Assembly (NCBI GenBank): GCA_965649765.1
Contig: OZ287757.1
Coordinates: 9,300,001 to 9,364,000, forward strand
Source of the DNA: Bispira polyomma
Lineage: Eukaryota
DNA length: 64,000 bases
Reading direction: 5' to 3'
Of this stretch, positions 3,072 to 46,110 are shown piece by piece (within the stretch, counting starts at the first letter, position 1; each line of letters opens with the position of its first letter). The notes under the pieces were generated by a model. It saw only the letters and a program-made list of their open reading frames with translations, was not told the DNA's origin and did not search any database. Position numbers and translations under genes: made by a program.

Positions 3072-6000
3072 TTATTTCTTCATGTTCCTTCTTTTGGGTG
3101 TAGCTCTGCCGGCTCGGCCTCTTTTGGCATATTCTAAGTCTTCTTTGGCCTCTGCCTTAGCCTTAGGTTCTTTTCCTTTAGCTATTTCCTCTGTCTCTAT
3201 ACGTTTCCGTTCTCTTGACTAAGAGCATAACGATATATATTAAAAAATCAATAGATTCCAATATGATGTGTTTAACTCAATGTGTTGCTATATAAAGTTG
3301 AAAAATGTACAGCAATATGTATTGGTGCATCATTCTCACAGCAAAATCATTGAACAATACTCACTTATTGGTATTCTACAAATAAATATGTATTTATCGG
3401 CAACAAAATCGGAAATAAAGCCATGGATGAAGTCTACACAAAATAAATTATTATTATTCCAGATCCACTACTTTCGGCGCTTGTTAATGAAACTTAGTTA
3501 TATTTTTGCAAATGTATTACTGAAATACGATCCAAAATATTGCACTACATATTACAAATACAAATATCACAATATGTTGCAGTATGATAAATATGTTTAC
3601 TCTGGACTGTCCACATACTTTGGTCCCTATTTAAAATACTACAAGTGCTACAAGTAACACAAATCAATAAAGAAATTAAGAAATATATTCCTCAAGGTTC
3701 CTCATGATAAGTCCAGGATACACAGGTTAAAGGTTCATTTTGGCAAAAGGCTTGAATGTAATGGTCCTAACCTGTGGAATAAGGATATTGCACCAGGACA
3801 TCTCCCTACCTTACTTTCCTCCATCACAGATTAAAGGCAGATTTGTTTAATAATGCATTCCCTCCATAACTGTCTTTTTTATTTAGTTTTGCTGTTTTCG
3901 CAATTATGATTTTTGCATTCCAGTTATCATTTAACTCCACACATTAGCATTTGATACAATCAAAAAGAAGCATTAACAAAGATTGATAATAATAAAATGA
4001 CAATTTTCAGGCACAATACTCACCTCTGCATTGGGCAGCGACTTTTTTAACATGATCCTTCCCTTTGCCATGACCTTGTCTCCGTGGTAGAGAACAGGAT
4101 GCACGTAAAAAGCTACAGTACTGGAAGGATCCTCTGGATCATCGCTACCCCAATAGACCTCCTGGTAAGCATCTCCCATCCAGCGACCACCCAACCCTGG
4201 AGTGTCAAAGGTCATCTGTGGTCTTTGCAGAACCATCTTCCAGACAATGGAGCAGGCACGCTCAGTGTACACATCTACCTCTGCCACATGTTCAACAATG
4301 TCCTCCTCAACATCTGGGTGATTCTCTGCCAGTGCGGTGTAAACAAGCTGAAAATAAATCGAGTATAGGACTAGTATATTTTAAAATATCTTATAAAACT
4401 GTCATGGTGGCAGCCTATTACAGTCAGATTGTCATAATCTTAAGTGACCTAGTGGTTAGGCAGTTGATGATGGTCTACTGATCAGAAGGTCTAAGGTTCA
4501 ACTCTACCTGTGTTAATACTGCTAGGTTCATTGGTGGAGTAACATCTTTATGAAATATGTGAACATGACATCAGAGACTTTTCGCAGAACGGTTTATATT
4601 ACTGTATGTAGAGCTATAACCACGTAGGTTGTAATTACAGTGTGTAAAATCATTAAAAATGCATATTTAACACGAATGGTTTCTTAAAGATATCCTTAGA
4701 GGGTAAAAATATTGTATATTATATTCACATTATGTAATACAATATACTGGCTACATAATGCAACACCTGAAATATAAATATACCCAGCAGTTATATTAAT
4801 GACAGCTCCGTTAAGCAAGAGGATAATGGCCTCACGGCCATATCGTGATAATGCCACTACAAATCATAAGTTACTGACAAGTCTGCAAAAAGTAAACTAG
4901 TCACTAGTCAGTAATCAAAATAGATTTCGAGAACCGTCTACTGTGGGTACCCAGTTGGGTAAACCTAAGGCAAAATTCAAAGTAAAATCTGAAACATATG
5001 TATAAACAACCAAATCGCCTTAAAAAATGTTTTGACAATTTATTTTTCACATAAGTTTGCTTTAAAACCTGATAAAAACAATTTTTTAAATATTTTGGTA
5101 GCTCACAAAAGTTGGTTTGTTTACCTACAAAACTATTGGTTTTTTTTTGATAGCTCTAGAAACGACCAAACAATAGTATATTTTCCAATTTTAATATTTT
5201 CATTTTTACCTGTTATAGCTTGCAAAACGTCCGAAGATAGTGAACCACTAGTTACTATGCCTATGGACAAAAGAAAGTACTAAGCGACAGAACAGAAGCC
5301 ACTGTAGCACCCGAAACAAATCTATCACTTAAATTAATTCCTTGCTAATCAAAGCCCATGTTTAATCCAATTACAGATTTTTTTTTACTAAACTGTCGCT
5401 GTTCTATGGACAAACATTTTACAAATCACAAAAGGTATACATAGATTAATTATTTTAGTCACACTTACTTGAATCCTTTAATAATCTTAATCACAACACG
5501 TAAATAAAATAGCACTCAGCTAAAATGGCTAATACGTTTTAAGCTTATAAATATAATACACACACATAAATAGTCAAGAGAATAAATTTATTTGTTTCCA
5601 GGGGGATACGTTATTTTGCAAGGGCATGGCCATATTTTGTATCCCCACTCCCCACACACTTTTTTTAGCGCTACACTTGGTTCAATTATATTTGTTACCA
5701 AACAAAAAAAACATCCATTTCTGACCCCATATGGTTTATTCCTATCGTGACACATACAGCTTCTGTAATTTTTATCCTTTAAAATATTCCAGTTAACCTG
5801 TATGCAATATATTGGGTTCACAATATATTTTTTTTCTCAGCTTGATACAGTAAGGAATCTAAAAGTTGCTCCTTTATCAAAAATTCGCCACCCCTAAAAT
5901 TTAAGCCAAATAAATAAAAACTGACACCAAATTTAAGAGCACAACTCACTACAGATTCAGAGATTACCCTGTTGACACGTTGTAACTATGCGTAACCAAG

Positions 6001-9000
6001 GTTCTTCCACTATTACCTTTCTACAGGAAAGCATGATTATGCCAATAAGCATTGGCATAATCATGCAAAAAACCTGATTTAACAGTTTTTAGCTATTTAC
6101 CATGTAATAGTGAGATCGCCTGCTTGTGGACGTTATGGTCTTTGTGAAATATTAAAATTGTTGTGTGTGGTATTATCTTTTACGTACGTGCAGATCGATA
6201 AAAAAATGTTCTGCAAAAAATCTTTATTGTCTACTGATGCCGACACATCCTATATTGTGGCACTATTTCTTTTGAGAATAAACAAGCACCTTATATGATG
6301 ATATATGAATAGGGTGCTATACAAAACATAATAATAATGGTCTCCCTGGTTACGTGGTGAATAACAATCCTGGACAAGATGCAAACACACCGTTGTCTAC
6401 TGATAATAACAAAAGCCATATTGTAAGAATATCCCTTGTTAGAGAACAGTCACCATAACAGATGCATACATCATAATAATGAAAACCTTTTTGAGTGACA
6501 TCCTTGGCAAAAAAGTAATTTATCAGGTTGCAGGTATCTGGAGTCACTAATACACACATCACAGAATACTTCAGAAATTTCATAACAGTCTCATGTATAA
6601 TATTTTGAATAAAGAATTATGCAGGACTAACATACATGCCTTTGACAAATACATGCTACTCGACAGAGAGGGTACTTAAAAAGTTATTGTTGCACTATGA
6701 TTTAACAAAAACAAAATGGTTTACCTGTCGGAATTGTTTGCAGTCTACCTTATCGGCTCGGGCTCTCAGTATGTCCCCCACTGCATTTTCAAACTGTTGG
6801 AAATTGCTCCCTCTGCATTCGTCTTGCTTTCTACTAGATTTGACTTGCTTTTCTTTCTACAGAAAAATACATAAAGCTTGATACAACTGATCGACATGGG
6901 GAGGACATAAAGTTGCCCACAATGGTCACAAAGTCATCTACCCATGTTGCTTAAAATATTGTTGTAAAACACATGACTAAATTTTATTGTGTGCTAAACA
7001 CCTTTAATTGATATTTATTTATTTTTATTTAAATGTCGCACTTTGTACCTATGTATTATCTTGTGCGACCAGTTACGGATAATGAGTTTTCTCAAACAAG
7101 AAGCACCAGCCTTGTATACTACTAATTTTCCCCAACATACACAAGTTATATAACAAGATACATGCCCTCAGCCTGAGTCAGCATTAGCCACCATTCTACA
7201 TTAAAGTGGACTAAAAGCTAGAGTTGACACTTAAGTATCTTTTTTCGAACACCTTTTATTGCATATGATGACAGGGTTTAACTATTTTCATTAAAATACA
7301 TTTTGCAGTGAACTGTCGCTTATAGAGAGACAAATACCATTTCGGTGAAATATTAATTAATACAATTATATTGTCAAAATGACATAACAATAAAAAGTCT
7401 ACCAATAAACAACAGTTATAATTGTTCATTTTAAGTACAATATGGTGTGAACGAAATAGGTTAATCAGTAGTTCTATCAAAAAAACTTATATGAACTCAT
7501 TTGTAACTCCAATAAAACAGTATCGAAATCCCTTTCAACATCACCAAACCTATTTAACATTGTAACTTAAATTAGACAGGATTAGGTTGCTTTAAGTTTA
7601 ACTTTACTGCAAACAACCACCCTTCAGCAAGTCTACTGCCAACTTCTCTGCATATATGGTGTGGACAAAATTCGAACCCCTGACATAGAGGTGGGATGTT
7701 AGTGTCTTATCACTACACCAATGAGTAATTCGAGGTAACATTTAAGTTGACATCATTGTAAGCCTTCAGAAATGGAACCGTGGCTTTTAGAGAGACAGAT
7801 ACGATTTGGGTGAAATATTAAATTATAAAATGTTATTGTCAAAACGACATGACAATAAAAAGTCTTTTGAACAATAAAAATATGATCACCACTGATCAAG
7901 GTAACAGGGTGCTATCATATCACCACTCTTGCAGCATGTAGCAGTGAACAGCATTTCTTACTCCATAACCTATATCTGTTGAAATATATAGACACCTCAA
8001 AAATATAATTATATTTTCCTTCAGTTTCTCGCATTAGGAAATTGTTAGTACAGCAAACCTAGTCCGTTCCACACTTCTACCCCACCCTACGACCCCAAAA
8101 GAAAACTATCGCCGGGAAATGAAGGAAATTCAATAACTACCTCATGGGGAAGTATGCTGTAGTAACCATTTCCTATTGTGAGTTTTATTAACCCTTGCGA
8201 CCCCTGTGTTGTTGGCAAGTGGTGGCTTTTTTTACCCCTTTTTTACTCTCCGCAATCAGTCGAGACTGCTTCAATTTTCCTTCAGTTCCTCTTAATAACA
8301 AAATTGTAGTATAGCAGACTCCTTTGTTTAAACAAAATACTTAAGGCTGTTATTGAATTCCCGAGTTAGTCTGTGGTATTATTATTATTATTATGCATTT
8401 TTAACATGCTTTATTGATGCTTGGCATCTTCTAAAGCGCAACAGCAGAATCAGTGATCCAATCGTAAAGTCCATGGGCATAGCAAGGTCATAAGGGTAGG
8501 GGGGTTAACAGATGGTTAATCAGCAAGCAACCAGACTGGGTGTTAACCCACCCCGTAGCATCCGGCGGCAAGGGGCGCAACTCCCTTTTACGTTTCACAT
8601 GGTGAAGGGTGCCGTGGTATGTTTTAGCGACTTCAGCTATCAGTAACCTATTACCAAAAACTTTCTTTTCAGGCTATAGTTTTTTCTTGTGGTCGAAAGG
8701 GCTAAAAGTAATGTTTAAGTATAAATTAATTATCCTTATCTTCCATCAGTTTTCATCACAAAAAAAATCAGGCGAGATACCTGATTGATGAAAAGCATGG
8801 GTTGGTCAACTTGTTCAAGCGGAGCACGTATTTGTGTCACCATCTCACTGTATACTGATGTTATCACCTTCTGTGCAATCTGTGTGAAATAGAAAAAGCT
8901 ACTGAATGAAAACTGGCAACATAGCATTGTAATTTGTGTTAAAACAAAGCATTGTATTTTGTGTTAAAACAATACAACATTATTACATGTCTGTTTTTCC

Positions 9001-12000
9001 CTTGTATTTATTCTACCCGAACTTTTACAAATCATGTTTCTATTATAAAGAAGGCTAATTGCAGGAGAAATTTTTAATCAGATGTTAGTTTGCACAAGAA
9101 CATTCACAGAAAACAAAAGTTACTGACATTATTATATTGAACTGTAATAATTGAACCATATTACCAATTATTTGTCAATTAAAGTTCACAGTTTTTGGTT
9201 TTCATGGTTATTTCTGAAATATAATTGTATATTACTGGATAATTTATCTTGACTAATAGAGTGTTCATGTAAGACATTTATATAACTCAAATATTGACAT
9301 AATATAATTTCTGATAAGACAGTGTTTAACAGTATATTATTATTATTATTATTATAGATTTTTAACGCGCTTTATTGATGCTAGGCATCTTCTAAAGCGC
9401 AACAGCAGAATCATTAGTCCAATCATTAAGTCCATGGAAATTGCAGAGTCATAAGGAAGGAAGTGGGAGCGTGCACGAGGAAAGCTAAGGTGGGTAGGCA
9501 AGATTAAAAAGATAGGTTTTAAGCTTTTTCCTAAAACTGATAAGTGTGTCAACTGATCTGAGGTCAACTGGGAGACTGTTCCATAACCGTGGAGCTGCGG
9601 TGGAGAACGCTCTGAAACCCGCCTTTCTGATTGGTCTAACCGAAGTGACAGAGAGTCTGTTGCCTCTCTTGCGGTCACTAAAGGAAAGAAGGGAGGCAAG
9701 GTAGGGTGGCTGTTGAGTGATTACAGCCTTAAAAGTGGTAACGTGAATTTTAAACAAAATTCGAAATTCAATGGGCAACCAGTGTAATTTTTTGAGGTAA
9801 GGAGTAACGTCTGTGCGACAACCCAGGCGAAAAATGACCCTACATGACTACGGCACCCTTCACCATGTGAAGCGTGAAAAGTGAAAGGGAGTTGCGCCTC
9901 TTGCCGCCGGATGCTACGGGGTGGGTTAATACCCTTCACCATGTGAAGCGTGAAGCGTGAAAGGGAGTTGCGCCCCTTGCCGCCGGATGCTACGGGGTGG
10001 GTTAATACTCAATCTGGTTGCTTGCTGATCAACCAGCTGTTAACCCCCCTACCCTTATGACCTTGCTATGCCCATGGACTTTACGATTGGATCACTGATT
10101 CTGCTGTTGCGCTTTAGAAGATGCCTGGCATCAATAAAGCGTGTTAAAAATGCATTATTATTATTATTATTATTACATAGGTAGTTTTGGATGGACTGGA
10201 GCTTTTTAATGTTTGACTTATTTGCTTTGTACAAGAGAGAATTGCAGTAGTCGAGGCGGCTACTTACAAGGGCATTTGCCACAATTACCACTGTGCCCAT
10301 GGACAAGTGGTTTCTGATTCTTTTGATGTCGCGTATGTGGTAATAGCAGGAGCGACAGATGTTGGCAACACGAGTATCGAACGAAAAAGCTGAATCAAAA
10401 GTGACACCCAGGTTTTTAGCATTTTCGGAAGGTAGTATGTCTTTTCCCAGCAGGGAGATGGGAAACAAAGATTTTAGGAGTTCACTGTTTTTCTTGTTTC
10501 CTATGAGGATGAATTCTGTTTTGTCAGGGTTAAGCTTTAGTTTGGAGTAGTTCATCTACGCCTGGACATCAGACAGACAGTCTGCAAGTAGGTCTATGTT
10601 AGTATCTGCGTTTTGTGGATTGAGAGAGAAATAGACTTGAGTGTCGTCTGCATACATGTGGTGTTTTATATTGTGTTTATTGATGACAGTGCTGAGAGGA
10701 TGTGTATAAAGGGTGAAAAGTAGAGGACCAAGGACGGATCCCTGGGGTACTCCATATGGAAGTTTTATGGAAGATGATAGGTGATCATCTAGTTTAATTC
10801 TTTGTGCCCTAAGAGTAAGGTAGGATCTGATCCATTTAAGGACACTGCCATTTATACCGAACCACTGCTTGAGAGTGTCGCAGAGCAGGACATGATCAAT
10901 AGTGTCGAATGCAGCTGAGAGATCCAGAAGGGTGAGGGCCACTGTGTCGTTGCGGTCCAGTGCAAGATTGATATCATTGCTGATGGAAAAAAGGGCACTT
11001 TCTGTAGAGTGAAATTTTCTATAAGCAGAGTGGTGGCGATTTTCAATGTTTTGTCTATTAAGGTGGTCAGAAATTTGTTTAGCTACAGCTTTCTCGATGA
11101 CTTTTGAGACGAAGCTAAGGTTTGACACCGGTCTGTAGTTTTTGAGATGGTTTTTATCAAGCCCTTGTTTTTTAATCAAGGGAGTTACATTTGCCGTCTT
11201 GAAACAGGTGGGAAAAACACCATCCCGAAGAGAAAAATTTAATATATTTGTTATGGGTGTGACAAGAATGTCAAGACATTGACTCAGAATAACTGCTGGG
11301 ATGGGATCTAAGTCACAAGATTTAATAGTAGACGATTTGATGAGTTTCAGAACTTCAAGCTCTGACAGTGTACTAAAATGAAACAGGTTACAAACCTTAT
11401 ATCCTGGGGCTGGAGGATTGAAGTGATGTATCGTTGGGAAGGCGTCACGAATGTTGCTGATTTTTTCCAAATTTTTCTGCTAAAAAAGTAAGACAGTGGT
11501 TTATGGGGAGAACCTTCTCTGATGTTCGATGTAGAATTTTGTTTATGGAGGCCCATAACCTTTTGGGATTATCCTGATTATCGGTGATGATGGAGTCGTA
11601 GTGTTGCTTTTTGGCATCAGTTATTAGCCTGTTGTAATTATTTGTGGCGATACGGTAACGGCTTCTGTCTAAGGAGGATTTTGTGCGTCGCCATTGACGC
11701 TCAAGTTGGCGTTTGCGTCTTTTGGCTTCTGTAATGGCGGCATTGGTCCATTCATGGTTGTTAGTTGGGGGAAGGGTTTTTGATACCCATGGCGCATGTT
11801 TATCAAGGACAGTAGAAAGGCAGTGATTGTATTGTAAGCTAAGGCTTTCAGCATTTTTGCATGGATGTTTGATGAGATTAGTTTCCAGGATATCGTCTCT
11901 GAATTTGTTTATATTAATTTTTCTGATGTTTCTGTATTTTATGACACGAGGTTTATGTGAGGCAGGTATTGGTAAATTTTAATAGGCGAAGGTTGCTAGG

Positions 12001-15000
12001 TGATCTAAAATCCCATCAGTAACCCATGATTCTCTGATGAGATTTGAATTTGGTCTTGCGATTACCAGATCGATTATGTGATTGTGGATGTGGGTTGAAG
12101 TAGAGATAAACTGTGAGAACCCAAAAGTGTCGAGGAGGGTGTTGAAATCTTTTGTCGCAGTATTTTCTATGTCAAGCTTGATGTTGAAATCACCAAGGAT
12201 GATAGCTTCAAATGGGAGAAGGTTAAGGGTCTCAAGGAATTCGGAAAACTCTTGAGTAAAACTAGTTAAAGAAGGGATGGGTGGTCTGTAAAAGGAGGAA
12301 ACTAGGAATAAATGATAACCGTTTGAAATTTTGCATGAAATGTGTTCGAAAGACGAGTAGGACTGGTTTTTTAGAATATCACAGGGTATTTTTCACAAAA
12401 ATGCCAACTCCTCCCCCGCGTTTGTGCAACCTGGGGAACTGATGAAATTTGTAGCCCGGAGGAGTAATATCCGATAAAAAGGATGTCGTATCCCTACTGC
12501 TGAGCCACGTCTCGGAGACGGCAGCAACATCCAGGTCCTGGGCTATGACTAAGTCGATAGCCGCAGGTGCCTTATTCTGCAAGGAAAGGGCATTAAATGC
12601 ACCGATCTTAAGCAAGGATGCTGGGGGACCCGGATTAATGCTGACGTCCCCGCAGAGCGCAGTCAACAGAGGGATCCAGATACTGTTAACCCTGGGGTTT
12701 GGACGGCGGGTAATGTGAATTTGAAAAGCTAAAAAAGAAGTGTTCACCTTATCCAGGGAGGCTAGTAGAGATGGACCAAGTGCAAATTGGTCGAAAAAAG
12801 GTGTATTGGATGGAGAGCAGGCGCTCCATTTATGTAATCTGACACCGGCCAGAATAATACACGGGAGAAGTGTTAAACAGAACTTCCACATCTCAGATTT
12901 GAAGGAGCAGTAGCAAGAAAAAGAACCAAATATAAATCACAGCTAGACAGAATCAAAATGAAAGATGTAGTTTATTCTATGTAAAAACACTTGTAGTATA
13001 AAAATATGTGAACAAAGTCACATAGAATAAAAGGAAATGCGAAAATAGCAGAAGAAAAACGAATGCGTAAAACGGGAAATGTGGGCGATAATAACAGAAA
13101 GTTAAACAGCTAGGTGATAAATGGCAAGAAAAGCCCTATAAGACAGACAAAGTAAATATGATAAAAAGAACTGTAATTAATCAAAATATATAATGTTTTT
13201 CGCCATAACTCGAGGTACCAGTAAGAATTTTACAATTCGCGAAACGGAAATTTTAAAATGCTACTTAACTGGTGCACGCTAAACCACAATATGACTAAGT
13301 CGATATATCGTATTGATGATACACTAAACTCCAGCCTCAACTGTCTTGGGTTCGAAACTTAGTCCTGGCATGTTTGTGGGAAAGTTGACAAAGGACTTGC
13401 TGGAAAGTGTGTGGTTATTAGAGCAGAAAACCTTGACCAACTACCCTGCCTATTATTGTACACAAAACATGTTGAAAACCTTAAGTAAGTCAACATCATA
13501 CTATCATTGTATCACATCACAAATACAGACCATCAGAATATCATGCAATAATGTCAGCCTCTCGCGTTCAGATTCCTCAGAAGGGTCATCCATATAGTCA
13601 TCCAGTGCATTCTTGGCATCCAGCCAAGCATCTGAACAGAACATCTGGTATGCCTCCGATACATTCATGGGTCTGTTCTTGACGCATATATTTTCCAGGC
13701 TGCTCTCGTCGCGCGATACCTTCACTTCCATTTCTTTAGAGAGCCTGAAATGTCACAAAACATAATGACATGGTCAAGTTTTTACTTAAAAACATGTTTG
13801 ACTGAACTTATGCTAGACAAGCAATGCATCCTGTATTTAATATCAAATTCAGCTTTGTGTAACTTTTCACTGCCTTACGTTTTCAAAAGTGTTTGTTTTT
13901 TCATATTGATAATTATCACGGTATTCCCCTATTTCTAGTAATCATTTTCCATCAGTAACTAAGGCCAAGTGGTTAGATGCAATAATAGGCGTGTCATTGG
14001 CAGAGGAACATCAAAACAGGGCAGTTGGTCAAGGTTTTGTGTCTGCTTTACAATCACTGGTCTGTCACTTTGTGTGTTTTATCCTATTTGTTCCTTTATG
14101 TGAGAAGTTTTGTCAGGTACCTACAACAGGTCAGTGGCCTACATTGTTTCAGCAATGTTTTCTTTACTAAATCTGAACCTAAGCTGTTGAAAGCAACGTA
14201 AAACCCAACTAGTTCAAATTCACCAGTAACTGTGAATCCTCCTAACTGAAGACAGGCTACATGGTGGCACAATTTGTCCACCTTTCAAAGAATCTTTAGC
14301 CAATATGTATGTACCTGTAACCCCAGGTTTGTACAAAACAGGTCCTGTGTGTTCATTAGATGTGATAAGCAATGTAAATTAAGTATAAACAATTATTTCA
14401 ACATTTGCGACAAAGTGTAAACACCAGAGTTGAAATAGACAATCTTGACACAAAATCATTAGACAAGTTGTCACACTTCACCTCTCGCATTATTCAAGTT
14501 TGGCGATATTCACTAATCAAGAGCACCAGGCCTCAAAATCAAAGGTTAACCTCTCATTTGATAGGCAGTAGTAGTTTCACAGTTTCAAATGTATAACTCA
14601 TGTCTACTAGTATAACAAGCCTCTTGTTCAATATTATGAGCAGGGCCACTGTCTCGAAGTGGTTAGAAATGTCTGCTTCACTATCACTGGTTTCTCACTG
14701 ATGTGGGTTTCAATCCTGTTCGTTCTTTTATGTGGAAAGTTTGCGAGGAGGTGCCATAGATCGGTGGTTTACAAGTACTGGAGTCTTTCAGCAGTGAATG
14801 TGGTTGTCGTTGTATCACCTACACTGTTGGAAGTGACATAAAAACCCAACTAAACTAGTATTCAATACTTACAGCTCACTTAGCTACAGACCTAGACCTT
14901 TAAAAATTGCCAGGTTTTTGCATTTAAAATGTACCAAAGTTAAAGTTATGGGACAATTTGACACATACAGCAACAATTTCTAAGTTGAAGCGAAATAATC

Positions 15001-18000
15001 ACAATGTTGAGTACACAATACCCTAAGTATCCCTTATTCACTACAGAGTCGAACCTCCCACCCTTTGCCATGTAGAAGATAAACGACAAAACACATAAAA
15101 TTGTGGGTTTTGCTTTTTTTGGTGAATGAGACCACAAAGATGCAGAAGCAATACAATCTCATGACTATAATAATGTAAACACGATTAGGTGTCAGATAAG
15201 TTGTGTGGTCATTGGTGGGTTTACAAAATGCAGACAACAGCCAACAGCTTCGAGACGAAAATTTGGAAAAATAGGCTGTCAAAATTAAGTATATGGACCC
15301 ATATTTTATCTAATGTTTGAAGAAATCACACAAACACTGATTAACATTTAGTTGTAGTTGATCCTTACATTAGAAAAAGTGAAAGGGGCTTGGTGGCCTT
15401 GTGCTTAGAAACATTTGCTTCACAATTACTGGCATCTCACCAATGTGGGTTTGAATCCTGTTTGTTCCTTCATGTGGAAACGCTTGTCAGGTGCCTGTCG
15501 TAAGCTTTTGATTGACGTTTTTCAACTCTGGTTTCTTCAATTCTTAAATTTGTCCATCGCAATGTGACCTAAACTGTTGTAAGTCACGAAAAACCCCACT
15601 AACTAAAACTAAATAGACAAAGTGATGAGCCATTTTGGACAATCAGCGTCATCCCTTCAACCTTTTCTTTGTTGGTTTGTGAGATCTGAAGCACTCGTAG
15701 ATAACAAAGTAACTGAAAGGTTTGTAAAGCACCAAAAAGCAGAATACCATTATTGAGAATGAAAAATTAAACTCATGCCTGACGGGGGAAAGTTGCTGTG
15801 GTGCAGCATATAGACAGGCATGAAAAGGTAGGATTTTTTAGATATGTTACATTTGTGAATATATATGCTATCTGTGCCGTCAGTACATTGGCAAATAAAC
15901 ATGGAAAAATTCCTGATTTAAGGAGAAGTAGTTCTGCCTTTGAAAATACACTGTCAATATAGAAATTATGTCTCTTATAAGATCAATATAGTGTCATGTG
16001 ATCAATAATTTCAAAATTCCTAGTTGACACTTTAGCATGGAATTTCCACAAGTTCTCTTACATATGATGTAAGATTGTGCTAGTAAAGAGATTAAGCGCT
16101 TGTTTACCCGACTGCAATTAACCTCCTTGATATCTTGGTTTAACAGTGTCAAGTCTATGTATGATAGCTGATATTTTAATCATTTTACAATTGGTATACA
16201 CGGATAAAATTACTCTCTGTTTTACATACGTGCCCACTAGGAACCACTTGTTACACCTATAAACTAAAATGAACAGGTTTCATGTGCATGATCTTCCACA
16301 ACAGAGATAATTATGCAAATTGAAAAAAATAAAATAGAATGTAAACTATGATCAGAAAGTTTGTGATATTTGTGTTTTACTTGAAATTTCAGCATTATTC
16401 AGTGTATGTTACTAAGTATGTATAATACTATAACATACTAAGTAATTAAACATGTATGTTTAACTTCTGATCCTGAGGGTCCTTGATTCTATGTCACAGT
16501 TGTCAACGGAGGTTAAACCATTAGCTTCCGGTGATGACACCAATACTGTCATGTTGAACTATCCCTACTTTGACTTTTATATAGTTTGGTTGCTAAGCAC
16601 TTTCAAAAAAATATCACTACGGCCAGATGTAATGGTGGAAGAAACTAGTGATGCAGCACCAACCTATTACAAGTACCTGCCAAACTTTCCCACATGAAGG
16701 AACAAACAGGATTAAGACCACCGTTCCCCCATTCCTTTCTTTTTAAAAACAAGTACTTTAGGATTGGTGTTAAACAAATGATTCAAATTAATAAGGGAAT
16801 CCTAACAAAACTTATTTTAACCTTTCAATAGTTTGGAATGTTAATCGCAATTGCATTTAAACCAACATGTAAATGTTGGGTCATGCTCTGATGTCACCCC
16901 TACACCCCAGCCTGGGATCTTGCACTTTGTCAATCAAATGTTCACACTGCTCTGTCAGGGGCAATGCTAGCATATACCGCACAAACGCGATCAACCTGTA
17001 CCAATTTATATAACTGGGGAAACTTGTGTGGGTTACCTTGTGTACGGATATAGAGCAATCACATTCATTAGTTCATTATGTCTCTTTGGAAGAAATGAAA
17101 TGTAATTCTTACAGCACTAAATGTTTAATATGACAGAAGCACCCTAGTCATATGTCATCTTCAATGGTGGTCATTCTTTGAAAGGGATAGTCCTACAAAA
17201 TAGCTCTGGTCGTCATCATTAGGCAATGGCATGTTCACCATCTTGCCCAGGGATGTTATCTCTGAATAAACCTGGTGGCATGAGTGGGTGTAAAATCTTG
17301 AAATTTCCCATTATCAAATTAACTTCCCCAACTGGGAGTCAAACTGGGGACCTTCCGATTACCACACAAATTCCCCAACTTCTATGACACGGGACACCAA
17401 AAGCCACATCTGTATTAATAAGAACAAGGGGATTAATTCAGCTTACATCATTAAACCAAACAATCATTGAAGCAACATTCATTAACACAATACTTTATTT
17501 TAAGCCATTACATTTTAGTAAACCACATACCACCTACCATGCCACTACTGGGCCAGATAATGAGAAAAAATCCTTGATCAGCACTTCTACCCAGATTCCT
17601 TCCAAAATTGAACAGATTTTATATATGTTTATATATATATAATATACTACAAGTTGGAATAGTAAAAATTACATCCCATTTAAAATTAGACCTAGTTGTA
17701 TCGATATTTTAACCAAAATAGCTAACCGTGAAACTTGGTGTAAGTGAACTTCTTAATAATTGTACATTGGTGACATTTTCTTCCAGCTAAAATGTATACC
17801 AATACAGTAGTAGATTTATATTTTGTTTGGAGGGCACTATGACACTCGGGCAGAGGAAGTGCACACTATCCTGGCTGGTTTTTAAGTTACTATATAAATA
17901 GGCAGAGGAGGGGCAGTGTACACAGCCTTGTACAATACAATAGAAAACTGGTCTTTTAAAAATAGTTTCTGTTGAGATTTGCATTTTCAGATAACACATA

Positions 18001-21000: not shown

Positions 21001-22123
21001 TGTCTACTGTCTGAAGCTTCTTCTTCTGAAATATAAGAGAAACCCCATGTGTTCCAGTGTTCAAATTTAAAGCCTGTAAACTCTTGTCTTTGAACCAAAA
21101 CCTACCACTCAAAATACACTTGAAAAAGTTGATTTGGGACATAGTGGACCTCATACAGTGGCGTCTTTGTGTGCAAGCGGGGTGAAGATTATTAACAACT
21201 GATATTAATTGTAAATGATATAATTTGTGTAACATATTAAAGTAAAAGTAGATTTTGAGAAAGAAACAATGAACAAAATGTCTGCTTGTTTATCAAGCTG
21301 GAATTGTGTAATATATCACACAAATATTATCTTTTCTTTTCGTCAAACTTGATTAATCTTAAATCCTCCAATAACCACATACGACTTAGCCAGAAATAGA
21401 AAATTTTTGATTGTAGTCGAATCAGATTAAGAATAGATATTGAGTGTTCACTCTTAGCTCATGATTTGTTTTAAGAACATTTGCTCAGTTGAGACTTGAC
21501 CTGTGTTGGGATCTCACTAAAAGAAACTTTACTTGGACAAAAATTTGAAAAAAATCCTACTTCTTAACTTTAAACAACAAATTTATATTTTTTTAAGTCA
21601 TAATTAACGTTTTCGATGCGTAATGAAGTATTAAATGAAAAATAGTAAAGTGGTAAAATTTTATTCCGACTATAATCTTCACAGTATTTATAAAAATTTA
21701 AGTAAATTATTAATATGATTAACAGACAACTATTATCAGACATACCTGCATAACTGTGGCCAGTGATTGACATGTTGCTATTGCCCTGTACTTCCCAAGC
21801 CATTTCTGTGATTCTCTGGCTCAAATCGTCTCTAGTAGTTAAAATATATCCTTATATTCTTGTTCTCAGGATACCAAATTAATATTCTTCTTTAAAACTT
21901 TTTTTCGTCTTTCAAGAATCCTATCTGACTCGAAACAACTCTTTTAATGTAAAATGTGTAACTCCTAAAAACCTTCCAGTTATATACATCTACTGGTGAA
22001 AATAACTGTATTACCCCCTCCAACACTGGTGTAGTTTTAACAGTCAACGTATTTGACAGTACAATAGGTGTGAAACCGTGTTATAATTGACCTTCTTGTC
22101 ACTAGAACATATAAATACACTGA

Positions 22124-22156
<33 letters not shown>

Positions 22157-22932
22157 TCTCCACAGTTTTCCAGTTCAATGTCTGTTGTCGGAAAATACAA
22201 CGGGCGATATAGTAAATATTCAAACCAGTCCCATATAAGCTATCTTCCTCAATTAATTTACTTCCTTATAGTACATGTACATAGACCCACTGCTTGTTTT
22301 GTTATTTCAAACTGTGTTCTGAAACTGGTTTTAATATATCTGTCGTCCTTCGATTTTCCCAATACGGGGAAGTTTTGTTCCATCCGAAGATAGAATTCTG
22401 TCAGTTGTTTAATAACGGCACAGATGTATCATTTAGGTTTTCCTGGTATAAAGCGAAGATATGTTTACGCAGAGAATTCGCCGTCAGTATTTTCCCCGAA
22501 AACACTGGGAATTCCCCACTACGCGTATTTGTAGCTATAAATAGTAACACCTAAGCAGAGCCTCGTTTTCGCGGTTTAGGTACTCATACTACTGCGCCAT
22601 GAATATGTAAACAAAGAAGTACTTCGATAACGACACATGACTGAGCCGATCAATATACAAATAAATCTAAACCACAGTCGTCGTTTGAAAACCTTGGGAA
22701 TTTTATACTGAACATTTATTTCATGATATATTGGCATTCTTATTTGTACATATATAATATATGGTTTCATAAACAATTATGTCACACCCCACCCCCCACC
22801 CCCCACCTCGTTTATAATAATATGCTTTTATATGACTAGGGTAATCTAACGAAAAAAATTATACGGATCAATTTCGGTTTCACGTTCGCCGATATATTCT
22901 TCACATTACTAATAGTTTGTGGGAGAATAGAT

Positions 22933-22964
<32 letters not shown>

Positions 22965-32640: not shown

Positions 32641-32645
32641 GATTA

Positions 32646-34797
32646 AGCCTCGGTGGTGATGCCATTTTGGGAGATATTTCTTCAGTTATGATACAATGTA
32701 TATAAGGTGACATAAGGTAAGGGAGGGTAAATTTCATTAGCTAACTGATATGAACAGGCCTTTATACAGTGTATCCAGGTAGTACGACAGTTAGACATGA
32801 CTGACATCAGGTTATATAAGGTAATAGAAGGTTGGAAAGGGTAAGGCCTCAGAAGAGTTATGGCAATAAATGGTAACATCAGCTTATTCCTCTATGGTGG
32901 GAGATGGTAATCGGTTCTTCCACCACTGGGGGCGGTGCTGCAACCAGTATTTTAATGCGTGCCATTTAGAACATTGGCTCTTTCATGATTCAGCCATTAA
33001 TGTGTTCACATCATAGATGTACAACAATAAATAGACAGCCAGCTCTTCATGTTGCATTGCTACAGGGCATTATGCAGTTGAATTATATAAACCAGAGAAA
33101 CAATGTAGATATTTACAAGTACTTAAGAAGGAGGCACGTTAGAAGACAGAACCTACTGACTGCAAAATTTGGCCTCTATGAAAACCTCCTGCAGGAGTTC
33201 GAGCTTAAAGACCTGACTGTCTTTAAGAACTTTATCCGTATGGAGCCACAGCTGTTTTGTGAGCTTTTTGATCAAGTGGGGCCCCTGCTACATGCAACGG
33301 CAAAACTGTTAGGTAGTCGATGGAATGTCTACCACACTGTCGGAGCCCTAGATGGAAAGCATGTGGTTCATCAAGTGTCCCTCGAGCTTAGGGTCTCTCT
33401 ATTACAATTACAAGGAATTTTATTCTATTATCCTGCTGGCTCTGGTGGATGATGACTACAACTTGTTGTGGGCGGATGTCGGCAGTAATGGTTGTTGCTT
33501 AGATGTCCAGGTGTTTAATGACTTTGATCTGAAGGAGGTTAAAGAATATTGTACCATTGGTTTCCCAGCTGCTGATCCATTACCAGGTGATAACAAGAAC
33601 ATACCTAAAAAGAAGAAAGCCATTCTTAGCCAGACATCTCACAGATGCAGAACGCATATTTAACTACAGACTATCAAGGGCAAGGCATACAGTTAAAAAT
33701 GCTTTTGGGATTTTTTCAATCAAATTCCGATGCATCTTAACCACAATGCAACAAGTTCCACATACTGTCACCACCATTGTTCTTGCTTGTGTGGTATTGC
33801 ATAACATCATGTGGAAGAGGTACCCTATAGTCCACAGTGGCCTTCAGGATGACGAACACTCTGTTGTACCTGGGCCTGTACTCATGGCAGATTAATGGAA
33901 CGCATCAGGGGAAAATTGTGCTAGAAAACATACTCAAACAGCCCTGCTGGAAAAAAGCCTGAAATAATTACCAAATGGAAGCAATCTGTTCATTCCATAT
34001 TTATTACTTATACATTACATGTTAAATACATTTCTTACACGTCAGGTGCATCTCAACAGCCTTGTCTTCTGAGAGCTTGGCCCTTTTTTGTGTTTCTATA
34101 ATCCTTCAGGCCCTTTACATTGAGACAGGGGCTGTCTTGGACCCAGTCAATGAGCTTTTCCTTCTCATCATCTGCTAAGGGTTATTGCAAAAATAATAAT
34201 ATAGTACATTAGTTTCAATAATCCAAAATCACACACTTAACCTTTGATCCTGTGAAATGAAATGATTGTGATATGCGTTTGTATGTTATACATAGCCCAA
34301 ACTGTTACTGCCATATATGGTCACTACCTAGCACCTGTGCTTCACCACCTGTCACCTGGTGTCACCGACACACAACCGCCTCTATAACTCATCTCACCAC
34401 ATTGTTACCGCATCAATAGCCTCAGACTGTAGCTTAATGGCGTCTCCTTACCGTCTCTTACCACCTTTTACTATCTATCACTGTACTCTATCATCAGAAA
34501 ATATACCATTAACGGTTACAGATGGTTCAATGCAGCTAGAGGTGATTATATAGGGACTATTGGGCAACAGGCTGATGCGGTCAATCAACCAAAAAGGCAG
34601 TTGAATTTGAACCGTCCCTGAAGAGCCGAAATTTCATGTTAAAACCATCACCTGACACGGCTGGTTATCAATGATTAGAGATTTTTGAGTGGTACGATCT
34701 GATATTGATATAGTCGATATATGATTACCGCAGTTACCAGGTGATATGAATACTGTCCCGAGCCACCTTTCCATACCAACAATGTGAAACTGGGGCT
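32646..34797 (+). mobile_element. Decayed PIF/Harbinger DNA transposon with HARBI1-like DDE transposase pseudogene (~33000-33900)
   Basis: GALDGKH, YYNYKEFYSIILLALVD, WADVGSNG, FNYRLSRARHTVKNAFG, ACVVLHN split over three frames; short imperfect TIR (agcctcggt / actggggct) and TTA on both flanks (boundaries tentative). Confidence 0.8.

Positions 34798-38083: not shown

Positions 38084-38087
<4 letters not shown>

Positions 38088-38131
<44 letters not shown>
38088..38131. repeat. (TA)n microsatellite in 3' UTR of gene B (others: (TA)n ~22123-22146, poly-G 22933-22963, polyT/polyG ~55491-55532)
   Basis: Read directly. Confidence 0.95.
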
Positions 38132-38134
<3 letters not shown>

Positions 38135-38226
38135 CTATTGCTTTATAAACAACAACATTTATTTTTTTTGCAGATAATAGAGATTGTTCTAATCCCTTGT
38201 CACAGCTCATTACTCAAATCTGTATG

Positions 38227-41200
38227 TCAGTCATTCCTCAGAAGAACCTTGCCTGGGGTCTTCAGTTTATCCTCCTGCCACAGTGCCGGGTAGACATAAC
38301 AGATGACCTTGGCCCTTTCAGAGGTCGGGTTGATACTTGTCCAGTACAAATCCTGGATCTTTTCTCCTTTCCATTCCTCCCCAATCCCGTCTGTCGTAAA
38401 CCTCATGGGCGGTCTCTGGATCACCATGTTCCAAGCCAGACGGCACGCGACAGAGACGTACGACTTAAAAATGTCGGCTTCCTTGACCAAGGGCCAGCGA
38501 CTGGTGATGTGATCTTGCGAGTCCGCATGGGACGGTGATGAACATGTGCTATCTAGTTGATCAAATATACTCTGAAAATTTTTATAAAAATCCATATTGT
38601 TTATTGTACTGTTTTGACATAGTCTATGGGGGGCCGCGGTGGCCTAGTGGTTAGCAAGCATTGCGCTTCACAATCACTGGTCTGGTGCAGTGTTCAATAT
38701 AGCTAAAATCACTACAATCTATCTAACTTTTATAGCGCTTTTTCTGTGCTAGCACATTTTAAGACGCATAAGACAGAATATCATTTTGACAATTTCATAT
38801 AGCCATTGAACGTGAGGGGTCATGACCTTGGAGACACCGGAAAAAGGTAAGAAGGCTAAGGTGGAAAAGCCTTGCTGAATAGATAGGTTTTGAGCTATTT
38901 CCTGAACCAGGCAAGTGAAGAGGCAGTGTGAATATCAAATGGCAGATCATTCCACAGCTTAGAAGCATCATATGAGAAACCAAAGATGCTCAGAATGTTT
39001 TTCGGTCCCTGGGTATATTTGTTCATACATAGAATTACTAGTACCAGCACATTGCCAAATAGGTGTAATGAAGAAAAGTATAACAATAATGTAGGGGTAT
39101 GACATGGATGGACATCGTACCTTCACAATAAATGTAATGTTGCCCAATAGTCAACAAACATTGTTGCCAAAGGGTAAAAATTAATATTTATAATCAACGA
39201 ATTTGCTGGCTTATTCCGTAGAAATTTTAATCACTTGATTGCTTAGGGCACTCATTAGAGCACATTTATTCACCAAGCTACAACATTAACAGTACCCAAA
39301 AGTGAAAAATGTATTATTGCTCAGCACATGGGCAATGATTCCATCAAATATCAAGTGACTTGGTCCCGCAGGTTATTGTTATGCAGTTTTCTGTGTTGTT
39401 AAATGTAAAGCTACAGTAAAAAGCACACAAATGTTGACTAATGGGCATACAAATTAATATCATTTGGTACTGTTATGCATCATTCACTAACCTGCTCTAG
39501 CTTCACCATTGATATATTATCACTTGACCTCTTCAGGTAGTTGCTCAACTCTGTGTGTAGATTCTGGGGCAGGGATTTAACCCTCATAATGTCACCAGCA
39601 GCATTCTCTGTTACCTTTACAATAAAGGATGCATAATTTATGGTATTAGTTAAGTTTGGGTTCATTGTGTCTTGTGTCACTTTACGACAGGCAGGTCACT
39701 GTTTACGGAAATCAAAGCAGGCCCCATGTACTATATCTACATTCAGTTTTCCCATATACATGCCAGGGCCGAAATTCCAATCCACAACTGCGGAAGTTGA
39801 AGCTGAAAGTGTTACCCCTATAGCTCACAAATACTTACTACAGTAGAACCCCCATTATCCAAACATGGAAGGGTCTTCAAGGAGAACAGCCATTTTTGTG
39901 CAAAACAATAAATGAAAACAAAAATTTGGTTTGTGGAAATTAGTTCTAATATTTTGAAATGTAGTATGTTGAAAGCAATTTTAAACCCAATAGAAACTAA
40001 ACTAAACCTATAACAAAATTTGACTTTAATTCCATAAAATATCAATCAAAGTATTGTCAGCCACGTTAAAACCGGATCACGTGGAAAATCGCAACTAACC
40101 TGATACATCTGGTCAGTAAATTCAACATATGGTATAACTTACATCTCCCAGGGGATTAATAATACCATCATAAAGACCTTTAAGTGCCTTCTCCGCTTCA
40201 TCATAGGAAATCTGGAAAACATGAATATGCATAACCTAGCGGAAAGCTGTACATAATGAATGTTAAAAATCGACTTTTCATCTAAACCTAAAACGAAACT
40301 GCCAGAACAACTATATTTCCTTGTACAAATAGTGAGTGTAGGCTTAGTGGTTAAGTGTTTTTTCAGGGGTCCTTGATGTGGGAAAATTCTTGATGCAGGT
40401 CATTGATTTTTTATAGTACTAAATAGTTTCATACATAATTCTAGCTTCATCTACCAATACATGACCTTTGCCATGTAACTTTTAAGATACTGAATATATG
40501 ACTGGAAAAGTAGGTAAATTGAAACATATTTTACTGCTCTAGAATAGTGTAACTAGCAAATAAGATACAAAACTCAAATAATCAAAAGAATAATTTCGAG
40601 CAAGCAACGTTTTCCTTTTGATATAGTAAATGTAACATTGATGTGGTTATGGAGGTATAATGTAAAAAAACAAGGAATATTCCTTTAGCATGTTCTACAC
40701 CTAATTTTGAATTCCTATATCTATGTTGTCTTTGTAAATACATGTATTGTTTGGACAGTTAAATTTTGTTCCAATGACAGAAGATTTAAAATCGAAGAGA
40801 AATTTTAGTATAACAGAACAGGAAAAATTAACAATTTAGTAGAGTAGAAAATGTAAAGTAAGGGTATAACACAAGGTTGTATAACAGAGACTTCACAGTA
40901 TAAGTGGACTATATTTGATGTATTAAACTCCTCCTCCCTAATTATTTGATGTATTAAACTCCTCCTTCCTAATTATTTGATGTATTAAACTCCTCCTCCC
41001 TAATTATTTGATGTATTAAACTCCTCCTCCCTAATTATTTGATGTATTAAACTCCTCCTCCCGAATTATATTGACTCCTCCTCCTTAATTATATTGACCG
41101 ATTTCAGGCAGAGTAAGAAATATCTAAATAGTGACTGATATTAGATAATGATATCATAATGTAGTTAGTAATGTAATGTAAAATTCATTTTCACATACTG

Positions 41201-44200
41201 TTCAGCATCCACACATTATATGGATATATTACTTGTTTTATGTACATTTCCATTTTTTTTGCATTTTTCAAACATTTTTTTACAACCCAATATATATGAA
41301 CATCACTTTCATTAATAATAGTCCCTCTTTAGAGCCTTGAGCTAGATGTGAACACGCAATCACCTGCTTGTGATGACCCTTGCCTGTCTCTTTCGGAGAA
41401 CCAGCTTTGGAGGATGTGTATCAATAGAGCACTGTGTAAATGCTTCGCTAAAACTAATAATAAGCCTGGCTTACCAAGATGATGTCACACAAAAGTCTGA
41501 GGTTATCAGCTTCCCCCTCACTTAACCGGTCCACGGTTTCCTTGGCTTCTTGCCATTGGTCAGAACACAGCTGCAGGTAGTCATCCTTAATCCTCATTGG
41601 CCGGTTCTTGATGTTGACGTTCTCAATGGTACTCTCACGTGCGGATACCTTGGCATCCATCTCATGGGAAAGTCTGTAATGATAGGATATGATATTATAG
41701 AGTTTTGACATGCATAATCAATGCCAGGCATCTTCTAAAGAGCAACATCATTCACAGAGTTTTTAAAATTGTAATCCGTTTCCAGCGCAAATTCGTGATC
41801 CAACGTGCTGCAACAGAGAAGGCATAGGATCCAATGGGTTTACTGGTTCTGATATAAGAGACTAAAACATTGTAACACTGACACCATAAGTTTTCCATAT
41901 GTGTTACCTTAAGTAAGTTACAATAGACACTCTATTATCCAAACTTTTGTTATCTGAATATACTACTTCTGGAATACACTTTCATACGAATTTTGACCCT
42001 CTTAAAACATGGTCTCTTAAAACATAACCTTACCTCATTGTCAAGTCCTTCACTTGTTCATCCAGCCGTCCACTTCTCCGTTCTTCACTTTCGAGAGCAC
42101 CCTCCGACTGCTTCAATAGTTGCTCTAGTTGAGACTTCTCCATCACGGCGTGTTCAAGAAGGTCTTGCAGCCGGCTTATTTTACCTTCTATTCCTTTTCG
42201 GTTGTCTGCCAGTTCCACTGCTTTTAGAGGCTTCCCTAAGGTGGTCGACATTTCCTTCATACGATCTTCTAAGCTGTCATCTAATTTGAGCATGGCATTC
42301 TTTTGTTCTTTCATTTCTTTCTCCATCTTATTGTTCTCCAACTGTAGCCTTTCCATATCTTGCTGTAAGCGCTCAATATGTCTGCCCTTCTCTGTATTCT
42401 CTTTCTTCAGTGCTTCTACTTTTTCACCCAGATCCTCCAAGTCTTTGACATGTTTGTCTCCTTTCTGCTCTTCTTCCTCCTGACTTCCTTGCATGTTTTC
42501 TTCTAACGACATCCCACCTACAGTATGTAACAATATATTGATAACAATTAATATATACAAATATATATACATAATTCAAACAATATGTTGTAATAGGAAA
42601 TTGGAAAATGAAATGTCTAGGTGTACACCATTTTTACAGTAAAATCTAATGTCACTGATTTATTGGTATTCTTTATTATTATAACAACATGAACCAGATT
42701 ATTTGTCAGCCAACGGAATAAGAAAATGAAGCAATGGATCCACTCAATCAAATGCAGGAATGAAATGCAATTCTAAGCATTAATGTTGTTACAAAATTCA
42801 AGGAAAATATCAATCAATATAAATATATGGTTTTCAGATCGCACCCGAAGAAGTTGCGGTTTATAACTTTCTGGAACAAAATGTCACTTCTGGATTGGTG
42901 GTGCACCAACTTCCACTAAAAAGGTCACGATCAGTGGTTCATATAATACAGCATTATAGCCTGGGAAAATACATGTATCATTGATTGTTTCAATAGTTTC
43001 ATTTTGATATCAAAGCAGCAAAGTAACGATTAATATTGAAATACCGTCCCAGTACCGCCCTAAGACCGTCCTATTTGTTGGTGCCATTTTCACACCCAAA
43101 TAATAATAAACTATAAAGTACTTAAGTTATATCTAACATTTGTGTGGATATATTGTTTACAGTGCTATTGTAAAAACATAAATGGATCCAACTTGCGATA
43201 TTTTAAATTGATTTTAAATTTTTCTTTAGAGAGCTTTGTAAATGTATTTTTTGACAAATTTTTAATCTTAAGCTGAAAAACAAAAACATGAAATTACTAA
43301 TGTATATGTAATATATTAATGTTCAGTATGCACAGAATGTTCATAGGAATACAGTCACATAACTCACATTTCAAGTTTAATGTTGCTGGTCTTGATATAA
43401 CCCCTGGACGCTGTTTCAAATTGGCCACAGTGTCAACATCGCCCGATTAAAAGCCGATTTTACTTACCTCTAATTGCAAGTGTCTCCTGTTCTGCACGGA
43501 ACTCCTCCGTGATAGAGTCAACTTTCAAATCACTCCCTGTTGTTTTGTGTGTCACCGGACTATTTCTGCCACCCTTTGACTCTGTGTCCACAGGTTCTTC
43601 ATCTTTACTGTTGTTAGAATACAAGTTTGTTTTATTTAAAAATAAGTTTACATTACAATTACATGTATTTATTTCATACGTACGTAGATAATGCAAATAC
43701 ATACAAACTAAAATAAGCATTTGAATCTGTCAAGCAAATTAGCCAGAAAACACATGAAACACAAATATAAGACCAAATATTGTCACAAATAGGCTTGACA
43801 GTCTGATAGCTAAAAAAACCAAAGGTTTTTCATATGGCATTGTATATTATAGACACATACAGAATACAACAACATCACACTTTACATGTATAATGTTAAC
43901 AGAAAATAAGAAACATTATATAAACCACAGAAACAACCTCTTTTAGTAGCTATCGGTCCATTGTAGCCAATCTATTGTTTTATTAATAATTATTAAGAAC
44001 AAAATAACAAAAAACAATATCCTTATAAGATTAAATGATATCCAATAGTTTAATACAGACATCTTGAAAAAAATATGAGGAGTGACATTGTTTGGAATTT
44101 TATTTGATATTTCTTCATCTTCTATATACAATTTTCCTAAATAATACCAGTGAGCTCAATATAAGCAATCTTTTGATTGTTATAAAAAGGTCATACCGAG

Positions 44201-44649
44201 TAAAATTTCACATAATGTAAAACTATGTATACTTGTATACTTTGTGTATGTTCTTGTTAATTGAGACACTTGGCACTGCAATAATCACTCATAATCACAG
44301 GCCTCTCACCAATGTGGGTTTCGATACCAGTTACTTCGTTCATGTTGGAAAAATTTTGTCAGGTACTTGCCATAGGATGGTGCTTTACGGTGGCTTCAGT
44401 CCTGGTTTACGCCACCATTAAATCTGGCAATCTTGATATAACCTAAGCTGTTGAACGTGACGTGAAACCCAACTAAATTCAAGTTATTACTTACACGAAT
44501 TGCTGCTCCTTCTTTTGCTCATTTGCTGAATCCATCCCTGTTTGGGCATGTTCCTCATTTGCATCTGGTTTTCCCATGCCTGGCAGTTTCTGAGGTGTGG
44601 TCCTGTTATTAATGGCTGCTCTTTGAGTAAAAGACCCTGGCTCTGCCAT
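38227..44649 (-). CDS. Mieap/SPATA18-like coiled-coil protein, paralogue B, ~504 aa; coding exons 44649-44495, 43607-43468, 42517-42034, 41673-41475, 40211-40143, 39614-39492, 38571-38227
   Basis: GT-AG junctions with phases 2,1,2,0,0,0 give a 1515-nt open frame; long heptad-rich coiled coil, then R|LSHEM..IENVNIKNRPMRIKDDYLQLCSDQWQEA and ACRLAWNMVIQRPPM..YVYPALWQEDKLKTPGKV, homologous to paralogue A. Confidence 0.8.
38628..38683 (+). mobile_element. 5' fragment of the same SINE
   Basis: ggccgcggtggcctagtggttagcaagcattgcgcttcacaatcactggtct is almost identical to the 63421 head. Confidence 0.8.
38710..39090 (-). mobile_element. Degenerate L2 3' fragment in last intron of gene B
   Basis: FSYDASKLWNDLP..FRK..KAFPP-type end and L2-like 3' UTR. 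Confidence 0.65.
40913..41098. repeat. Minisatellite, 31-bp unit x5 plus degenerate copies
   Basis: Unit atttgatgtattaaactcctcctccctaatt read directly. Confidence 0.9.
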
Positions 44650-46092: not shown

Positions 46093-46110
46093 AAATCGAA
46101 AGTGAAAGTA
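46093..46110. promoter_or_regulatory. ISRE/IRF-E upstream of Mieap-like gene B
   Basis: AAATCGAAAGTGAAAGTA, identical over 18 bp to 31275-31292; ~1.3 kb upstream of the ATG-containing exon (acceptor at 44785), where a non-coding first exon is expected. Confidence 0.6.

Follow-up and report, generated by a model that had tools for sequence, protein, structure and literature searches.

Oyster IRF8 (CgIRF8), an interferon regulatory factor (IRF) of the IRF4 subfamily, acts in an RLR-MAVS and STING-TBK1 interferon-like response (PMC5557890, PMC8218723); both poly(I:C) and OsHV-1 induce it (PMC5557890, PMC7064767), and it switches on reporters driven by interferon-stimulated response elements (ISREs) (PMC5557890). 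Vertebrate Mieap (SPATA18) is a p53-induced mitochondrial protein (PMC3022033, PMC10845071), and the expansion of its family in bivalves, to ~53 copies per species, has been read in terms of mitochondrial quality control or general stress tolerance (PMC8382680). Nested genes on the strand of their host are mostly intron-poor and usually not co-expressed with it (PMC3814207), and at H13/Mcts2 transcription of the nested gene truncates the host transcript (PMC13309782). The locus described here joins these subjects: in a window of 64,000 nucleotides from Bispira polyomma (contig OZ287757.1; G000:C10:9300001-9364000), the gene models place an IRF gene inside the first intron of a Mieap-like gene (gene A), on the same strand and close to a second Mieap-like gene (gene B).

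The window has a GC content of ~36% and no N letters, and all feature coordinates are relative to it unless prefixed by a contig. The genome searched comprises 1.035 Gb in 75 contigs, and a relative (L042, ENA ERZ22147071) served as the comparison species. The three sequencing runs are of DNA; they give even depth, contain no splice joints, and confirm the assembly over 17648-22922 only.

The host gene and the nested IRF gene

Genes A and B are both on the minus strand, with stop-free frames and GT-AG boundaries at every intron. Gene A consists of six exons (31039-3072) encoding 437 amino acids, and gene B (38227-44649) of seven coding exons (44649-44495, 43607-43468, 42517-42034, 41673-41475, 40211-40143, 39614-39492 and 38571-38227) encoding 504 amino acids with a disordered N-terminus, a long coiled coil and a MIEAP domain; the two proteins are 31% identical over 346 residues. 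Exon 1 of gene A (30642-31039) encodes an acidic, low-complexity N-terminus, a bipartite motif resembling a nuclear localization signal (NLS) at amino acids 79-96 (30752-30805), which is conserved in L042, and a coiled coil, and it ends in a phase-2 donor. Exon 2 (13531-13744) starts the MIEAP domain and is 82% identical in L042, exons 3 (8781-8879) and 4 (6725-6856) belong to the gene model and are seen in L042, exon 5 (4024-4347) encodes the C-terminal part of the MIEAP domain, and exon 6 (3072-3218), predicted from the window sequence, encodes a basic tail and the stop. The NLS-like motif and the basic tail suggest that the gene A protein may be nuclear, unlike vertebrate Mieap.

The Pfam profiles recommended as a check by the initial annotation of this DNA recover both families: with a cut-off of 27 bits for each profile, the MIEAP model PF16026 scores 31.3 bits in gene A (exon 5) and 36.2 bits in gene B, each from a single MIEAP exon, and the IRF DNA-binding domain model PF00605 scores 131 bits. 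The best PF16026 copy in the genome reaches 95 bits, and higher-scoring, canonical-like copies are found on C5 and C1. Genes A and B fall in a clade of more than 50 members with ~20% identity to the C5 and C1 copies, in a tree that has moderate support and includes no vertebrate sequence. Their identification as SPATA18 orthologues was rejected because the canonical-like copies match PF16026 better.

In the gene model, exon 1 of gene A joins the exon at 13744 in frame, and this GT-AG junction is homologous to the exon 3/4 junction of gene B; therefore, the IRF gene is placed inside intron 1 (13745-30641; 16.9 kb), which also hosts a LINE (long interspersed nuclear element) fragment. A layout of three genes in simple tandem was rejected, since the models place the IRF gene within this intron. 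The order in L042 is identical: the ISRE core (~2761-2772), gene A exon 1 (2921-3241; equal phase and equal bipartite NLS-like motif), two IRF exons (7850-11542), gene A exons 2, 3 and 4, and the start of exon 5. The IRF proteins of the two species are 69% identical, with a nonsynonymous divergence (dN) of 0.06 in both domains and saturated silent sites (proportion of silent differences, pS, 0.79). Because silent sites are saturated while dN remains at 0.06, the arrangement must be old and the IRF is under strong purifying selection, its frame intact. Linkage and ISRE conservation in a relative, proposed earlier as a check, are found in a distant one, in which the nesting, the ISRE and the upstream kB site have all been kept.

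The IRF gene has a first coding exon of 19 codons (21803-21746, minus strand; orthologous exon at 7850-7901 of L042) and a main exon of 1628 nt (21025-19398) that holds the DNA-binding domain, the linker and the IRF association domain (IAD) together; the 561-amino-acid frame is stop-free, and AATAAA signals follow the stop codon in both species. The IAD (PF10401) scores 61.5 bits. This domain is absent from IRF1 and IRF2, and the best-scoring matches carry names of the IRF8/4-like type. In the tree, the nested IRF is separated from an IRF1-like gene with support of 97/91 and receives no placement in an animal class; its DNA-binding domain is 66% identical to that of a chiton, 64% to Solemya and 62-63% to abalone, mollusc IRF8-like proteins being the closest named ones. 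On these grounds of sequence it is assigned to the IRF4/8 subfamily. Membership of IRF1/2 was rejected given the IAD and the position apart from IRF1. A pLxIS-like motif at the C-terminus is kept in both the window species and L042; we take it to be comparable to that of IRF3. As a separate observation, the peptide read across the first coding exon (21746-21831) loosely resembles that of the gene A exon 1/2 junction, possibly by chance.

A multi-exon IRF4/8-like gene is located at G000:C4:65115158-65144582, with at least seven exons, of which two encode the DNA-binding domain and five the IAD. In the DNA-binding domain it is 73% identical to the nested IRF, above every named IRF, and the Solemya orthologue likewise spans ~10 coding exons and 34 kb, with no Mieap match within its locus. 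Since the domains of the nested IRF are contained in one main exon, the coding introns of the parent having been lost, and since the multi-exon C4 gene is closest in sequence, the nested gene is classed by structure as a retained retrocopy of a C4 parent. An IRF1-like gene is present on C6, and three further intron-poor, diverged, IAD-bearing IRFs are found at C1:21602827-21611931 and C1:23685364-23688360; these C1 genes have open frames of 515-651 amino acids, two of them divergently oriented, and read as repeated IRF retroposition in this lineage.

The initial annotation had placed a gamma-activated site (GAS), a kB site and an ISRE upstream of the IRF gene, and all three elements could be located. 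A promoter module at 22544-22491 (minus strand) comprises a MEF2-like A/T box (22544-22531), a kB site (GGGGAATTCCC, 22517-22507, ~700 bp 5′ of the IRF gene) and, after a gap of 5 bp, a GAS (TTTCGGGGAAA, 22501-22491), the factor names following consensus motifs. The strict GAS TTCCNGGAA has 0 matches, and the site present is of the TTTCCCCGAAA form. Further upstream is an ISRE-like site (22883-22870, minus strand; GAAACCGAAA at 22881-22872), through which autoregulation is possible. In L042, the 14-bp A/T box, the kB site and a further motif of 10 bp are conserved, the counterpart of the ISRE-like site being GAAACTGAAA, ~250 bp 5′ of the kB site. Because a kB-GAS pair at most 30 bp apart arises in 18 of 300 shuffles of the window, the weight of the pair lies in its position at the 5′ end of the IRF gene. 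As for the proposed STAT and NF-kB input, the kB site is conserved, and the STAT part is weaker than claimed, the position of the GAS not being conserved.

ISREs across the Mieap-like family

The ISRE of gene A (an IRF-E of tandem GAAA repeats; 31292-31275, minus strand) is 236 bp 5′ of the ATG, and the identical 18-mer of gene B (46110-46093, minus strand) is 1.44 kb 5′ of the predicted ATG, a distance that suggests a non-coding first exon. As initially described, the two paralogues share a strand and the same upstream ISRE; the 18-mer is in fact the sole significant match between their upstream regions (E 8e-5), and its 12-mer core recurs ~150 bp 5′ of the orthologous gene A ATG in L042. The window contains the sequence GAAANNGAAA 16 times against 4.8 expected, a number that 0 of 100 shuffles reach.

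The enrichment extends to the genome, where there are 54 homologues of gene A exon 2, chiefly clustered on C10 and C3. C10 continues beyond the window with another six Mieap-like genes (G000:C10:9378483-9380254 and 9545446-9718820), so that A and B form the edge of a larger cluster. The scan covered exact copies of the 12-mer common to gene A, gene B and L042, and paralogues were located by their exon 2 homologues, from which distances were measured. Among the 131 copies of the 12-mer, 15 are within 20 kb upstream of an exon 2 homologue against 0.13 expected (P 2e-26, which overstates independence because the paralogues share ancestry). Two of these 15 sites defined the motif and 13 are independent of that choice. 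Orientation is as in A and B at 13 of the 15; nine sites are within 5 kb upstream and none within 5 kb downstream, and the 12-mer is absent from 97 kb around last exons. A variant ISRE with an (A/G)G spacer is upstream of a Mieap gene at one of its 57 sites.

Within 20 kb, the 12-mer covers 14 of the 54 paralogues. In the tree the site-bearing paralogues are deeply diverged, on long separate branches; because of this, and because similarity between the upstream regions of A and B is otherwise lost, passive inheritance of the ISRE across the family is unlikely. The genome-wide enrichment suggested at the outset as a check is therefore present, and the proposal that Mieap-like genes are IRF targets gains support from this enrichment and from conservation in L042, with ambiguity as to which IRF reads the sites, since they also fit the IRF1/2 consensus. 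What did not survive is the idea of a self-contained regulator-plus-effector module: the genes with ISREs belong to several separate clusters, which makes this locus a single member of a wider putative regulon.

Some 12-mers are found elsewhere. Four exact copies, in two inverted pairs, are at G000:C10:41053979-41254654 with no Mieap exon near, possibly marking another IRF-regulated family, and close pairs are at C1:79273062/79273128 and C2:66493225/66493378.

The MIEAP fold, microbial homologues and neighbouring features

The C-terminal 85 residues of gene A were modelled with a pLDDT of 96. By VIA-align, four GrpE chains match this model with Z 5.4-7.1 over 78-80 residues (the next match has Z 2.8), and by Foldseek GrpE fills all of the top 12 rows. 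The full MIEAP domain, modelled from a related transcript (pLDDT 86), has GrpE in 12 of its 13 best Foldseek rows, each of them a weak match; in the Atlas it matches a mollusc Mieap cluster with TM 0.74, plant GIL1/IRKI and fungal clusters with ~0.6, and GrpE with 0.38. None of 27 family members matches the GrpE profile PF01025, no sequence match was obtained in the PDB and no match in the viral structure library, and a homologue search with the full Mieap-like protein returned only itself. The C-terminal part of the MIEAP domain is predicted to fold like GrpE, as a helix followed by a C-terminal beta-domain; that the domain also binds Hsp70 is a tentative guess of rather low probability. Pfam clan assignments aside, no open-access paper linking MIEAP to GrpE was found.

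MIEAP homologues are also found in microbes. An oyster nidovirus of 64 kb encodes one (PMC11848433), and a bacterial-looking contig of the L042 sample (L049:2-9122; ENA ERZ22147071 ctg21634l) carries three intronless MIEAP-like open reading frames, in a stretch of 33-36% GC, with housekeeping genes (TrmO, SAM synthetase, AdoHcyase and cytochrome c) as neighbours. Two of the three frames overlap, perhaps as parts of a single broken gene. The MIEAP-like domains of these frames are of the expanded clade (27% identical to gene A across 250 amino acids, E 4e-16), and host-to-symbiont transfer is possible. Both microbial occurrences fit a role in host-microbe conflict.

On the plus strand, divergent from the Mieap-like genes, is a Ser/Thr kinase gene (52001-53247, ATG at 52001) that the initial annotation had noted in this orientation. 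Its presence and direction are correct, but it is not intact: a frameshift near 52190, between the N- and C-lobes, indicates a pseudogene or an assembly error. Comparison shows no preference for any particular immune kinase, and its candidacy as TBK1/IKK was rejected; it may be annotated as a generic Ser/Thr kinase whose membership of the system is only putative. The kinase region (52001-55200) includes C-terminal coiled-coil exons and a partial duplicate of an exon end (~52710-52840), and a 10-bp ISRE core (51181-51190) is ~810 bp upstream. Degraded LINE copies with endonuclease and reverse-transcriptase motifs are at 9352-12891, 23308-26347, 46266-46946 and 56953-57648, one of them inside gene A intron 1 and another 160 bp upstream of the gene B ISRE, and a DNA-transposase-like fragment (32985-33895) separates B from A.

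A putative IRF regulon, its alternatives and related systems

The explanation preferred here, with moderate confidence, is that the locus belongs to an IRF regulon as one of its sites, in which the Mieap-like family would be IRF-induced defence genes and the nested IRF an inducible amplifier. The proteins of this lineage-expanded family combine a variable N-terminus, a coiled coil and a MIEAP domain with a GrpE-like beta-domain at its end, and their genes would be turned on through upstream IRF sites in antiviral or inflammatory signalling. The parts of the explanation differ in strength: IRF-driven induction of the family is probable, and a functional role of the nesting is conceivable but somewhat doubtful. 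The retro-copied mRNA of an IRF4/8-like gene would have entered gene A intron 1 and been kept by selection, under a promoter of its own that responds to kB and perhaps to STAT. Upon infection, active NF-kB (and perhaps STAT) would induce the nested IRF from that promoter, and the protein would be phosphorylated or activated at its pLxIS-like tail. An IRF, be it the nested copy, the C4 parent or the IRF1-like gene, would then bind the ISREs and induce the Mieap-like genes and possibly the nested IRF itself. Because gene A and the IRF gene share a strand, their transcription would have to interact, through interference or read-through. The effectors would act by chaperone or membrane binding, the leading guess being engagement of Hsp70 by the GrpE-like domain.

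Several points weigh against this explanation. Transcription starts, splicing across the IRF gene and induction are all inferred from sequence. By exact matching, 40 of the 54 paralogues have no 12-mer within 20 kb. The ISRE motif fits the IRF1/2 consensus as well, so that the nested IRF need not be its reader (PMC7819612), and the GAS is not at the equivalent position in L042. The matches to GrpE are weak (E 0.08-3, Z 5.4-7.1), and a fold alone shows no function. Finally, the entries listed in excerpts of the oyster and Nematostella antiviral transcriptome supplements include no Mieap entry.

The strongest alternative, with a probability a little short of even, accepts that the family is IRF-regulated and regards the nesting as a frozen accident, in which a retrocopy landed in an intron that was open and active in the germline, acquired a promoter of its own and has no regulatory tie to the host, the reader of the ISREs being the IRF1-like gene of C6; at the level of the family it agrees with the explanation above. 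Such a history would be typical of same-strand nested genes, which are for the most part intron-poor retrocopies seldom co-expressed with their hosts (PMC3814207). The agreement of the motif with the IRF1/2 consensus (PMC7819612) and the existence of the C6 gene are in its favour, and a nested gene is hard to move, so that its position is expected to be conserved without function. However, ~54 small targets in a 1.03-Gb genome make a chance landing in an ISRE-bearing gene unlikely unless it was favoured or selected, and the nested copy is accompanied by an ISRE-like site as well as a kB site that is conserved.

An unlikely alternative is that one ISRE promoter serves both products, exon 1 of gene A being spliced onto the IRF exons to give a chimera of ~700 amino acids (NLS, coiled coil and IRF) that would create positive feedback. 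The best-looking acceptor in the window, at 21831, is in frame and stop-free; L042 has in-frame, stop-free acceptors at 7825 and 7783, and eight codons before the IRF methionine look conserved. The chimera would end at the IRF poly(A) site, given the AATAAA in both species. On the other hand, the strongest-looking acceptor of L042, at 7848, is not in frame, and some of the apparent codon conservation follows from where it lies, a related transcript begins at the homologous methionine, and the IRF has conserved promoter motifs of its own.

Least probable is a function of the family in mitochondrial quality control or in stress tolerance generally, with the ISRE-like motif as a promoter relic passed on passively or a site for a non-immune factor: the published readings of the bivalve expansion (PMC8382680) and of vertebrate Mieap (PMC3022033, PMC10845071) favour it, but it does not explain a tandem IRF consensus or 18 identical bp in upstream regions of A and B that are otherwise no longer recognizably similar, and the tree puts both genes in the expanded clade, apart from the canonical-like C5/C1 copies (with moderate support), gene A having an NLS-like motif.

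If the regulon explanation is extended so that the MIEAP expansion provides IRF-induced antiviral effectors whose GrpE-like domain engages Hsp70, with the copies of the nidovirus and the bacterium belonging to the same conflict, and the nested IRF is a cis feedback switch working by read-through, interference or a chimeric isoform, the whole becomes speculative and improbable. The regulon itself would have wider significance. Molluscs mount an interferon-like antiviral response, the lineage-specific effectors of which are poorly known; if many paralogues have kept an upstream IRF site by selection, the Mieap expansion becomes a candidate antiviral family, a matter of interest for shellfish disease. 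The GrpE-like fold offers the first concrete biochemical hypothesis found for the MIEAP domain, including that of human SPATA18, and a transcription-factor retrogene kept within the very gene that it is predicted to control offers a compact natural test of whether nesting can provide feedback.

In the open-access literature searched, no link was found between Mieap and interferon, IRF or virus response, and no precedent for the combination, the family-wide motif enrichment or the GrpE-like fold. The ingredients do have precedents, in invertebrate IRF-ISRE signalling, the mollusc Mieap expansion and same-strand nested retrogenes. The model of the MIEAP C-terminus shares with GrpE and GrpEL1, which are Hsp70 exchange factors, a long helix and a small beta-domain that align over 78-80 of 85 residues; it differs in its identity of 6-19%, an rmsd of 3.6-4.4 Å, the unmatched PF01025 profile and an extra helical bundle, and it is clusters with the C-terminal domain of plant GIL1/IRKI (PF24994) that match the whole MIEAP domain (TM ~0.6). 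With the bivalve SPATA18 expansion OG24 (PMC8382680), the family shares a disordered N-terminus, a coiled coil, the MIEAP domain and ~50 clustered copies, whereas A and B are divergent (31-36 versus 95 bits) and have upstream ISREs, with an NLS-like motif in A. As at H13/Mcts2 (PMC13309782), a gene with its own promoter occupies a host intron on the same strand; here, however, a transcription-factor gene is nested in its own predicted target, and imprinting is not implied. The kB and GAS promoter of the nested IRF resembles that described for vertebrate IRF1. CgIRF8 and the nested IRF have in common the IRF domain and the IAD, and mollusc IRF8-like proteins are 55-66% identical to the nested IRF in the DNA-binding domain, with ISRE-type sites upstream of candidate targets. 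Whereas the oyster has one IRF8-like gene (PMC5557890), the window species has, besides a retained multi-exon parent on C4, an intron-poor retrogene inside a candidate target.

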